NCBI GenBank assembly: GCA_047495785.1
Contig: JBLDXI010000017.1
Span: forward strand, 2,604,001 to 2,668,000
DNA length: 64,000 nt
Reading direction: 5' to 3'
DNA from: Lepidodermella squamata
Lineage: Eukaryota; Animalia; Gastrotricha
This document shows, piece by piece, positions 27,935 to 32,400 of the stretch (position 1 is its first letter; each line of letters starts with the position of its first letter). Made by a program: the position numbers and the translations under genes. The notes under the pieces were generated by a model. That model did not search any database and was not told the DNA's origin. It saw nothing but the letters and a program-made list of their open reading frames with translations.

Positions 27935-28890
27935 TCGGAAGACGAGAGTTTGTCCAGGACGCATGCGGCAGACTTCCGTCGATTTCCTTGTTAATTTCTT
28001 GCAAATCTTTTTAACTTTTTTGAATACTTATTTTAATCAATTTTATTTCTATGAATATTCAAATTTATGCAAATTAGGTCTCGCCTAATTTAGAGGAGAG
28101 ACGTCTTAGTGCTCGTGCTGGGTTTACCCTCATCGACAGATTTTGTGTAGAGTGAGAGGCGGAAACTTCGACGAGAGCAGCATATTGTTACACGGTTGTC
28201 GCGCAGTCCTGTTTGAAAACTAAGGAAGCCTTGCGGAGTGGAGTATTAACTGCGCCACACGAGAATAACTTATTGAGGGAGGGTTCTGTTTCAAAAGGAG
28301 GTAGAACAACAAAGCCGCGTGAGATCTACCCCACTCCGCTCGCCCTGCTCGCTCCGTCTCGCAGTTACAATGTGAGAAGAGAAGCAGCGGAGTATTAACT
28401 GCGCCACTGGCGAGACGGTAGGCTCATAACATCACTCCATCGGTATCAGTGAGCGGTGCATAATCACACTGACAACTGATATGCAAAGAACGGTTGAGAC
28501 AATTTCCGTTTCAAAATGAGCTAGACGAACGAAGCCGCGACATTGTGGGATGTCTTTCAATGATTTAGTCAGCTGAGTATTTCACTGAAAATCACTGAAG
28601 CCTGCGTCATTGCAGTTAACAAATGAGATTGCATACAGCTAAATTGACTCTGATTGCGCTTCTGATTCACATACGATACTTTTCCAATGCCCCCCTCGCC
28701 TTCAATTCAACATTAGTAGGCACCAGCATACGATGATCAGAGCAGAACGCCGCGTCACTGATGTGTGTTTTATCACTGTAACACTTATTCACACCGTTCG
28801 ATAGTAGTCGATCAAATGTCCTGTGTCGAAGACTTCTGATTTTCACTGATCATCGTTTCATTCGGTCAACTGAGAGTAAATATACTGCTG

Positions 28891-29453
28891 CATTATACTC
28901 CCGTTTTGCAGGTCAAATGTCACACGTGCACACGTGATCAAAACGTGTGATCAAAACACTAAACTTTTAGGTTGTTGCTTGTTGTTAAGTTGGTGGTGGT
29001 TTCGTCATTTCGTCAATTCGTCACTTTGAAAAACTTCCAAAAGGCCGAAAAAACTTAGAAAAAATAAAAAAAATGATATGAGCTGGAGTCGAACTATCAA
29101 CCTCTGGCTTGGAGTGCTAGTGCTGGAACCACTAAGCAAGCAAGTTGTCTTAAAATCGTGTGCATCTATCTTGTTGAAGTATGCTTTAACTGTGGCCTAT
29201 ATCAATTGATTCTAAGACGGGTCCCATGTGTCTCCTGTGTGGTTTAGTGGTTCAAGCTATAGCTCAGGAAACCAGAGGTTGATAGTTCGACTCCAGCTCA
29301 CAACATTTTTTTAATATTTTTTTTTCATAGTGACGAGATGACGAAATGACGAAACTACCACACTAGCAACAACCTAAAAGTTTAGTGTTTTGATCACACG
29401 TTTTGATCACGTGTGCACGTGTGACCTTTGACCTGCAAAACGGGAGTATAATG
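28891..29453. mobile_element. Palindromic MITE-like element with ~90-bp near-perfect TIRs and two internal inverted tRNA-derived cassettes
   Basis: CATTATACTCCCGTTTTGCAGGTCAAA...GGTTGTTGCT at the left is the reverse complement of the right end. Interior symmetry continues to the centre. Confidence 0.88.
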
Positions 29454-32400
29454 TGTCACACGACGCCTGCAATGCCATTGAAATGTGATTGCAGACTACA
29501 ATTCCCGCTTCTCTTGTGCGTATGATTCGCAGATGGCACACTCTCAACATCCACACTTTTTCTAGGTCAAAAGCACGGTTGCCGTTGTTGAGAACAATGT
29601 TCAACATTGGTTACATTGTTTATTTTTGTTCAACATCCGAACTCCGAACACATGAATCATCTGATTTATAGATAGCTAAAGATTGCTGCTCCTTGAGGAA
29701 TCTCCGGAGTCATTCTAGACTTATTTACAGAATTATGTACTCTTTTCTCAATGATAATCACGCTGTGTTATCTTTGAGTTAAAATTAATAACTGATCAGT
29801 GATCAGTGATCAATGACATGTGAGTTTCGTATCTAATAAAGAGCAAGTAATATCGGAAGAAAGCTTCCCTACGACATAGCTAACCTCTATTCAATACCTT
29901 ATCATCAGTAATAGTTTAGTTTTGTATTCGAAAAACTATTATCAGAAGAACGCTTTTATATGAGAGAGCTAATTCCTCTAAGGGTACGCATTCCGAGATC
30001 TAACCTTTACGCATCTAGAGAGATCAGAAGCATAATGCTGAGAGATGAAGCTACCCTGAGAGGTCTTCGCAAATGGAATAATATTGACATCAGCCATCAG
30101 CCACAATCCAATTAGTTTGTGTTAATTTTATTCCACTTGAATAATCTTGAACTTCTAGATCTTCTCAGAAATTTACCGGGTGAATTCCTTGGAGATTAAT
30201 ATATCGAGCGCAATTGTGCTTCCAATTTGGATTTTGAGTTTGCATATTTTTCGTTAGAAGAGTGATAGAACCGAGAGAAATTCGGAGTTCAGAATCGCCA
30301 ATAAGCCCAGAAGTGTGGATGCTTATCATTCATCATTATCCGCGTTGAACGATCCTTACCTGAGCATTTGAGCTCAACCACAGAAAGGCACCATAAAAAG
30401 CACAGAGAGACATAAGTTTTGTTCTCTATGATCTCAAGTTGCTCGTTTGCTAAATGAGTGTTGGCTTTGACTCACTGGTATAACTTCTTTAAAACGAAGA
30501 ACAAATGCACTCGCTAACTCACAGTTAGAGTTAAAGTTTTGATTCGATTATTACAGATGGCCACTGCGGTTACGTAAATGTCAGCACTCGTGCGAGTTCG
30601 AAGTTATCAATTCAACTCAGCATGACATCAACGTGGTCTGTACCAAAACTAAGATATTTTAGATTGACGGCGCAGATAAATCATACCTCTAGAGACAAAT
30701 TGAGATGCGCAACTAAGCACAATAAAACTGAATGAAGAATTCCGATGAGAGCTTGCAGGAGCTAGTAAAACTGAGTTGTGGGAACAGCTGATCGAACGCG
30801 CCGATACTCGCTGGTGTCATGCAGTGAACACATTGAAAACGCATCGTCACGCTGACTGCATGCTTTGATCGTCTAGCTAGGGCTGGGTGACTTACTCAAT
30901 GCCACGAACATCTGACCGCTGCTCTACTCGAACTCTTGACTCTTTTGAATGGGAGATCTGATATTTCAAGCTGGCCGCTGGCTTTTCTAGCCGCTGGCTC
31001 TTACTAGACCTTTTCTATATAAAACATAAAACTCCTTTTTTCCGCAAGACAACGCAAGACAATGGGACCTGCCCATTACGCCACGCTGCAAGCGCAGCGC
31101 AGCGGCGTAAGAAAATCGTTCGTTGCACGTGCATGAGAATTTCCGCGCTCGATATTAAGCGATTTTGTATTAGATTTGTATTTAAATTTATTTCAAAGCC
31201 TAATTTAGTATCAATTTTAAAATAAAAATTTGTTGATGAATAGTTTTTCACATAAATTTTTGGTTTATCACAATGTGTATGCAAGTGAAATATTTAAATC
31301 TATTTAGACCTCGACATATTTAAAAATTTTATGGCGTTAAAAAATAGTAAAAAAATTAATAATCAAATTTGGAAAAGTATAAATGCCCTTTAAGAGCAAA
31401 AATAATGAGAATAAATTAAAAGAAGTTGTTTTGTTTGAGTTTCTCCACGTGTTTTCATGTTCTTGGCACTCGACGCGTTTTACACAGTAGCGAAGTGCTG
31501 AATGTAGTGCATCTCCCGTTTGGCCTGATTTTCTGGCTTGTTGTTGTCTTTCAGCTTGTTCCTGCAGCTTAACAATAAGCATACGTATTTCAGCTGCTCT
31601 TTGATCATGTTATTATTGCTGCTAATCAGTATAGTGACTTTTGAGTTAACACCTTGAAACTTATGCCATCAGAGTTACTTTGAGATTGGAACTTGGACAT
31701 CATTTTCTTTCATCCAGCTTCTCAACACCGTCCAAGTATAATGCCGTGGTCATTATTTCTTATTTAATTAGCTTTCATTTGCCTGGACGCCGCTCAGCTT
31801 TAAGCTTTAGCTTAAATCCTGTAACACAGTGAATTTTGATCTTTGAGCCATGTTTTTGATTATCTTAATTGACTCGTCATGCAGCTGTTTCATGTGTTAA
31901 GCTTTGTTAGTGCTAGATTAAAGTGGTTGTTATTCTTCGATGCCTTCAGTTCGTCATTTCATTTGACTCAATTCATCATTATGGCCAATTTCTAGCCCAT
32001 AAATTGATCACCAGAACATCTATGATAATTTCCTGGGCGTCTTTGGGATCTTTTTGTAAATCTTCTTGGATCTTCTTGTCGAACATTGGAGTGAATCTTA
32101 TCAGCTAAACATGGAATGCTTGTAGTTTTCTAACTGCTAGTAACAGGATACTGATGTGATGGAACTTTGAAGATTGACTTAATTTGGAAGATTTTTCATG
32201 CTTGATTTTGACAATGACTCTTCTTAAGTTAGTCAAGAAAGTCAGTTACTTGATTGCTTGCAGTCACCGACTTTCATTATTTATTCACTTAGATCCGCAG
32301 GCTTTCATGTTTCGCTAATCAAGATTGAATTTGGATTTCTCGTTACATTTCCGTTGTCAAGTTTCACTTCAAATCTTTGATTTAAGTGTTGATCGATAGT

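Follow-up and report, generated by a model that had tools for sequence, protein, structure and literature searches.

The window, by which we mean the whole stretch of 64,000 nucleotides analysed here (contig JBLDXI010000017.1 of the gastrotrich Lepidodermella squamata, positions 2,604,001 to 2,668,000), contains at 28891-29453 a 563-bp near-palindrome with one worn-down, tRNA-derived unit in each arm. This element is a mobile, non-autonomous cut-and-paste transposon with terminal inverted repeats (TIRs), i.e., a MITE (miniature inverted-repeat transposable element). Its units keep the two internal promoter boxes (A box and B box) and the oligo-T terminator of a gene that RNA polymerase III (Pol III) transcribes, which suggests that the element probably exploits the host machinery for tRNA transcription. 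The copy in the window is located in a stretch without long open reading frames (ORFs), ~1.8 kb downstream of the nearest long ones, and no ORF of at least 50 aa lies wholly within the 563 bp (a single ORF of 66 aa just overlaps the right end).

Structure and copies of the element

The palindrome consists of three inverted-repeat blocks, which pair 28891-28982 with 29362-29453 (92 nt, 98% match), 28993-29033 with 29321-29361 (41 nt, 90% match) and 29059-29135 with 29244-29320 (77 nt, 84% match), and leave only ~100 nt in the middle of the element unique. From the left, a TG dinucleotide (28889-28890) forms one copy of a 2-bp target-site duplication and is followed by the left TIR (28891-28982, plus strand), which was delimited by inverted-repeat search, starts with CATTATACTCC and includes two CACGTG motifs and two GTGATCAAAAC repeats. 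Next come the left subterminal TTCGTCA repeats (28993-29033, plus strand, two inverted repeats), which are probably transposase-binding sites. The left tRNA-derived unit (29074-29146) is on the minus strand and reads toward the left end. Its A box occupies 29129-29139, its B box 29085-29095, and its predicted Pol III terminators are two T-runs on that strand (29059-29073), of eight T (29066-29073) and six T (29059-29064).

The unique centre (29147-29232), placed outside the palindrome by both the inverted-repeat search and the family alignment, separates this unit from its plus-strand counterpart. The right unit (29233-29305) reads toward the right end, with its A box at 29240-29250 (TGGTTTAGTGG) and its B box at 29284-29294 (where GTTCGACTCC occupies 29285-29294), and its predicted terminators at 29306-29325 comprise seven T (29306-29312) and nine T (29317-29325). 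The element is completed by the right subterminal repeats (29321-29361, plus strand), which read TGACGAA, the reverse complement of TTCGTCA, and by the right TIR (29362-29453, minus strand), which ends with GGAGTATAATG and was delimited by inverted-repeat search and copy alignment. A second TG (29454-29455) matches the one on the left.

This organization agrees with the original prediction, made from the letters of the sequence, of a TIR transposon with an outward-reading tRNA-derived unit (A box, B box and oligo-T) in each arm of a diverged 563-bp palindrome: all of its coordinates for boxes and T-runs hold in both arms. Aligning the two arms likewise reproduces the pattern it had described, since the box-bearing parts are alike, with identity across the variable loop and T arm, the anticodon-arm regions are different, and the T stem is broken by the same two mismatches in both.

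The genome (121 Mb in 151 contigs) was then searched with the element, a check which the original prediction had proposed, and yielded 86 matches, including ~17 full-length copies at 81-97% identity with differing flanks. The presence of many copies in unrelated flanks excludes chance. Every aligned copy has the termini CATTATAC ... GTATAATG, and homology ends exactly there, as in the window copy (CATTATAC at 28891, GTATAATG at 29453). Two pairs of ends had been considered beforehand, and it is the outer pair at CATTATA (28891/29453, with the TG duplication) that stands, not the inner TA at 28896/29447. For the family of the window copy (family A), a 2-bp duplication surrounds 11 of 14 copies and varies in sequence (TG, AA, TT, TA, AT, TC), which at a chance of 1/16 per copy corresponds to a binomial p-value of ~1e-11; two other copies of this family have flanking repeats of 3 and 5 bp. 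A 2-bp duplication was also detected around 6 of 9 related elements.

These related elements were reached through the 22-nt terminus, which with at most three mismatches has 132 matches genome-wide, against 5 in a control, and which occurs both as inverted pairs 525-563 bp apart (sister MITEs) and as pairs 3.1-3.6 kb apart. Sister families were picked by their termini alone (inverted, 525-550 bp apart) and not by their boxes, which gave family B (L057 and L060, 538 bp), family C (L058, 550 bp) and family D (L059, 525 bp). The two family B copies, at separate loci (L057, C2:1964197-1964734, and L060, C7:1386740-1387277), are 100% identical throughout their 538 bp and both have TG as the flanking dinucleotide; this family seems to have moved very recently. 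By contrast with such independent insertions, the family A copies L015 and L016 (C66:128221-128762 and 131248-131789) have identical flanks 3,027 bp apart, and are a tandem segmental duplication.

Some copies have themselves received insertions. L013 (C3:3320373-3323287) is a family A copy split by ~2.3 kb, and its halves (1-503 and 495-563) overlap by 9 bp of the query, which suggests a 9-bp duplication made by a different transposon. L056 (C36:38879-42476) is a diverged family A-like copy with an insertion, in which a 290-aa ORF resembles a non-long-terminal-repeat reverse transcriptase (motifs recognized by eye). At the other extreme of size, the 109-bp relative L064 (C2:755587-755695) is little beyond two TIRs (with CATTCTAC termini) flanked by a GA duplication, so that either its ends suffice for mobilisation or its interior was lost once it had inserted. 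Putative solitary TIRs lie on C13, C4, C10 and C32. A targeting of insertions near tRNA genes was also considered and rejected, as ARAGORN found 0 tRNA genes within +/-1.5 kb of 23 family loci. Outside this genome, the terminus pattern gave just six single, unrelated chance matches in JGI metagenome contigs.

Promoter boxes of the tRNA-derived units

Families A to D have the same layout, from TIR, TTCGTCA repeats, an A-run and a reversed tRNA-like unit through a unique centre to a forward unit, T-runs, repeats and the second TIR. The first ~46 bp of the element are conserved in the alignment of the four families and all of them keep the TTCGTCA repeats. By BLAST, the units of families B to D are not detectably similar to the family A units. 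To compare the units, we used single copies to represent families B to D, set the box positions in advance at the canonical 8-19 and 52-62, and excluded pairs between the close families C and D from the identities. In classical numbering, the A-box consensus is TRGCNNAGTGG (positions 8-19) and the B-box consensus is GGTTCGANNCC (positions 52-62).

The eight arms of the four families align without gaps from A box to B box, with AGTGG and TTCGA spaced 40 nt apart in all but one arm, where the distance is 41 nt. Within the A box, T8, G10 and A14-G19 never vary among the eight arms; the B box reads GGTTCGA in the six sister-family arms and AGTTCGA in both family A arms. An oligo-T run (at least four T) follows each of the eight units. 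At the sequence level, each part of a type-2 Pol III unit is thus present, i.e., A box, B box, tRNA spacing and oligo-T.

Conservation is concentrated in the boxes. Between-family identity is 0.81 for the A box (7/11 columns invariant) and 0.77 for the B box (7/11), compared to 0.45 between the boxes (4/33) and 0.38 upstream (0/17). The boxes thus hold 14 invariant columns out of 22 and the rest 4 out of 50 (Fisher p-value 1.9e-6), and the excess persists for the A box alone (p-value 1.9e-4) and when six alignment-anchor columns are removed (p-value 6.5e-4). Overall, the boxes are as conserved between families as the TIRs and the transposase-binding repeats. Within family A, B-box diversity is 0 in both arms, with about a third of all columns varying. 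The box conservation across copies by which the original prediction was to be judged is therefore present, both between the four families and, for the B box, within family A.

Similar units occur beyond these four families. A fifth family, L073 (with a CATTCTAC terminus), has a unit with both boxes, and a genome search for a pattern made of a B box, 40-68 nt and GACGAANNGACGAA gave 89 matches (control: 0), or roughly 60 arms.

Outside the units, the CACGTG palindromes within the TIRs (28920-28940 and 29404-29424) are conserved in all four families, and could be transposase contacts or host E-box sites. All four families also have a TATA motif within a centre that is otherwise unalignable (29197-29202 in the window copy, with homologous sites in L057, L058 and L059); counted from T8 of the right A box, it is 42-45 nt upstream. 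The left arm has no counterpart, and the position is more distant upstream than that of the usual Pol III TATA element.

As tRNA genes, these units are degraded. ARAGORN found no tRNA gene in the window, nor did it find one at the 23 family loci or among the sister families. The Rfam tRNA model likewise had no match at E <= 10 over 1.4 kb around the element or over the sister families. In a narrow scan of 276 nt, the model matched the minus arm locally (29082-29137; 14.2 bits, E = 3, cut-off 29), from the D arm to the T arm (model positions 10-63, acceptor stem excluded), and had no match at E <= 10 in the plus arm. The covariance match to tRNA which the original prediction had looked for is hence found for one arm, as a local hit below the cut-off. 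None of the units forms a cloverleaf in minimum-energy folds and none has an acceptor stem. In families B to D the T-run directly follows the T arm; the two are separated in family A by seven bases and a discriminator-like A. Rfam matches to MIR821, small nucleolar RNAs and long non-coding RNAs were discarded as noise, and a scan for bacterial promoters and terminators was set aside because the host is eukaryotic.

An 85-nt unit used as query had no match in the genome outside this MITE group, which indicates that it was not copied from a resident short interspersed nuclear element (SINE) or from a close tRNA gene. In family D the anticodon stem is a perfect 5 bp and its loop, CTGCCAA, has a GCC-type anticodon; TCC-type loops are present in family C and in the minus arm of the window copy. 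From these loops, one may guess that the parent was perhaps a tRNA-Gly gene; a pattern for a tRNA-Gly(UCC) gene had no match in the genome. A loose first look for tRNAs returned ~14,660 candidates genome-wide, and dozens of identical tRNA-Thr(CGU) genes are scattered over C1, C3 and C19. The tRNA gene load of this genome is unusually high.

Partner elements and their transposase

The terminus pairs spaced more widely include three elements of 3.1-3.3 kb, L054 (C33), L055 (C29) and L072 (C4). What L055 and L054 have in common with the MITE is limited to 27-35 bp at the termini and to the TTCGTCA repeats of the subterminal regions, and L072 has the terminal 29 bp in common with MITE family B (100% identical at one end, 96.6% at the other). 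These autonomous-type partners encode proteins of one conserved family and are without a tRNA-like unit. Given these shared ends, the MITE is most likely moved in trans by partners of ~3.2 kb.

We interpret L055 as a compact two-gene transposon. It contains an ORF of 187 aa on the plus strand (291-854) and three ORFs of 98, 265 and 138 aa on the minus strand (951-2951), the latter probably being exons of the transposase. The 265-aa ORF has 63 matches in the genome, several of them ~1 kb inside further CATT(A/G)TA termini. Beyond this genome, relatives are scarce: the L055 ORF had no match in a word-index protein search, and only 8 relatives were found among 1.84 billion representative proteins, all of them unnamed fragments from ENA metagenomes.

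Domain searches with these proteins remained below threshold. The ORFs of L054 and L055 have no Pfam match, including none to DDE_Tnp_4, and a profile search with the transposase against PDB sequences gave no match. The paralogous ORFs C42:256070 and C1:928113, which share 44% and 37% identity with the L055 ORF, reached Transposase_21 (PF02992) at 22.3 and 21.2 bits, below the cut-off of 28.6, and four other paralogous ORFs reached DUF1280 at 18 bits. Similarly, the neighbours of the partner protein in the Atlas are clusters of DUF1280, RAG1_RNase_H and Transposase_21. To complement these searches, we modelled the partner protein from nine homologues (pTM 0.63, confident over residues 6-130). 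The model has the order strand-strand-strand-helix-strand-helix, and its best Foldseek matches are RAG1, BbRAGL (the amphioxus RAG1-like protein) and HzTransib (E = 3e-4 to 7e-3), a result which does not separate the CACTA-Mirage-Chapaev (CMC) and Transib superfamilies, as the PDB holds no CMC structure. In the transposase family alignment, an aspartate is conserved, and a Cys/His cluster and CxxC come after it. This arrangement is that of both RAG1/Transib and CACTA transposases.

From the RAG1/Transib-type RNase-H fold and the faint similarity to Transposase_21, taken together with the 2-bp duplication and the subterminal repeats, we place the partners in the CMC/Transib clade, nearer to CMC. 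For CMC, duplications of 2-4 bp are expected and 2 bp are found, and the subterminal repeats are a likeness with CMC transposons and MITEs as well. Animal CACTA elements and CMC MITEs with 2-bp duplications have been described, and the described CMC ends are CAC...GTG (PMC6004678). Other points differ: the termini are CAT...ATG in every family examined here, no Pfam match reached its threshold, and we found no described CMC MITE with tRNA-derived units. Of the Transib hallmarks, the RAG1-type RNase-H fold is present in the predicted model, but the duplication is 2 bp instead of 5 bp and the CAT...ATG ends stand in place of heptamer-like CAC termini.

Origin and role of the units

We assign the element to a lineage-specific MITE group marked by CAT...ATG ends, TTCGTCA subterminal repeats and 2-bp duplications. 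To account for these observations, we propose that a tRNA gene was captured by an ancestor of these MITEs and that the arm was then duplicated in inverted orientation, which would have produced one outward-pointing unit per arm. The tRNA body has since decayed, with the acceptor stem lost and the other stems broken, while the type-2 promoter (A box, B box and 40-nt spacing) and the oligo-T terminator were retained by every family. As the stems have decayed and the boxes, spacing and terminator are kept, we infer that selection acts on the promoter, i.e., on TFIIIC/TFIIIB and Pol III binding to each end of the element, rather than on the ~75-nt RNA, and occupancy of the units by Pol III and TFIIIC is predicted. 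Since copies of a MITE decay neutrally once inserted, conservation between families reflects the needs of the successful “master” copies. Taken as a whole, this reading, in which a MITE group of CMC/Transib type captured a tRNA gene whose boxes were then selected for recruitment of TFIIIC and Pol III, has in our estimate a probability of roughly 0.6.

As for what the element would gain, tRNA genes and TFIIIC sites have an established barrier activity. It is on this basis tempting to speculate that bound sites would keep the ends of the element in open, silencing-resistant chromatin, where the transposase could reach its binding repeats; such accessibility, or protection from silencing, is the most likely benefit we can propose. 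We know of no cut-and-paste transposon that needs Pol III. The partners are mobile without units and the 109-bp relative, made of TIRs alone, keeps a 2-bp duplication, which indicates that the units are dispensable for the chemistry of cut-and-paste transposition and that any benefit would be indirect. A bolder version, in which a whole lineage of DNA transposons keeps working Pol III cassettes at both ends for its own benefit and out-competes plain deletion derivatives such as the 2.2-kb copy L061 (through open chromatin or clustering with tRNA genes), is a genuine but tentative possibility, which we would not favour at present.

This mobility without units is one of several points that weigh against the proposed role. 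The units are below threshold in every tRNA detector and none folds as a cloverleaf. Within family A, the diversity of the units (0.035-0.050) is only slightly under that of the rest of the element (0.042-0.072), and the eight arms count as fewer than eight independent samples, given the close relationship of families C and D. Transcription of the units and factor binding are predicted from sequence, the link between partners and MITE is drawn from their common termini, and L054, the closest candidate partner of family A, has a broken reading frame.

Several of these points (the failure of tRNA detection and cloverleaf folding, the small excess of conservation within the family, and partners that transpose without units) would equally be expected of a neutral relic, in which a tRNA gene captured by chance was duplicated with the palindrome and is now decaying, the box conservation being an accident of few related samples. 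We regard this as plausible and as the main rival, if on balance improbable. Neutral decay should strike box and non-box positions alike, yet the invariant columns are divided 14/22 against 4/50, and the spacing and a terminator are kept in all eight arms of families selected through their termini. Moreover, the acceptor and anticodon stems are already destroyed, so that there was time enough for the boxes to decay. The box-specific pattern thus counts against a relic, in a sample which is small and related.

A second alternative is that read-through of the element produces double-stranded RNA, from which small interfering or microRNA-like RNAs are made, with the tRNA-like parts incidental. 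The original prediction had listed such a long hairpin RNA among the possible products, and as a single strand the whole element does fold at -330 kcal/mol, compared to -135 +/- 6 for shuffled sequences. This hairpin shape is also what the weak match to MIR821, a plant hairpin precursor, reflects (36 bits, far under the cut-off of 249). A strong hairpin is however generic to any palindromic MITE and lends this product no specific support, Pol III would terminate at the oligo-T runs of either strand before completing the arms, so that read-through by Pol II from outside would be needed, and the conservation at canonical box positions is left unexplained. We thus consider this alternative unlikely.

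The remaining alternatives concern the type of element. A PIF/Harbinger-type MITE is very improbable, as the duplication is 2 bp of variable sequence instead of the 3-bp TWA, and the elements with the same termini encode a RAG1-fold, Transposase_21-like protein rather than one matching DDE_Tnp_4. A tRNA-derived SINE or SINE dimer spread by retroposition, to which the A and B boxes and T-runs could also point, can be dismissed almost entirely on account of the 92-nt TIRs matched at 98%, the duplication fixed at 2 bp, the lack of a terminal A-tail or of a tail derived from a long interspersed nuclear element (LINE), the DNA-transposon partners with the same termini and the confinement of the unit to this MITE group. 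The “SINE-like tRNA head” of the original prediction is a loose term, the genome being without a SINE that bears this head and the acceptor stem being missing.

Compared to known systems, the preferred reading of a MITE with selected Pol III promoters has its nearest analogue, in logic, in Cassandra. In this plant terminal-repeat retrotransposon in miniature, a domain derived from 5S rDNA is present in both long terminal repeats (LTRs), with boxes and terminator conserved and the RNA fold changed (PMC12486564). The MITE described here is similarly a small non-autonomous element with a unit derived from a Pol III gene in both terminal repeats, in which promoter boxes and terminator are conserved above the rest and the predicted RNA has lost the fold of its parent. 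The two differ in that Cassandra, an LTR retroelement, has repeats in direct orientation, uses a type-1 (5S) promoter, makes a 5-bp duplication and needs an RNA copy to move, whereas the MITE has cut-and-paste TIRs, inverted units and a type-2 (tRNA) promoter, and no obvious need for RNA. The tRNA-derived SINEs also have a tRNA-derived head that keeps its A and B boxes while the cloverleaf decays, but they retropose, lack TIRs, end in a LINE-related or A-rich tail and are flanked by duplications of variable length.

A precedent for a MITE interior that comes from a Pol III-transcribed retroposon is MER6, a mammalian Mariner-type MITE whose interior includes a SINE-derived V domain (PMC6887750). 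There, the captured part is the conserved central V domain and not a tRNA promoter head, in one unmirrored copy, and no promoter-specific conservation was reported. In the full-text literature, we found no cut-and-paste element or MITE with conserved tRNA promoter units (a provisional result, with Dfam and Repbase outside the search).

If boxes and terminators are truly preserved in both arms across families, recruitment of TFIIIC and Pol III can benefit a DNA element, and this MITE group would be the equivalent, among DNA transposons, of SINEs and Cassandra. Each insertion would then place paired potential TFIIIC sites, with possible barrier or insulator activity, and potential small-RNA genes at a new locus, which would represent a mobile source of TFIIIC or insulator sites in an animal genome crowded with tRNA genes. 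The units of these MITEs may likewise explain where some of this genome's tRNA-like sequence came from.

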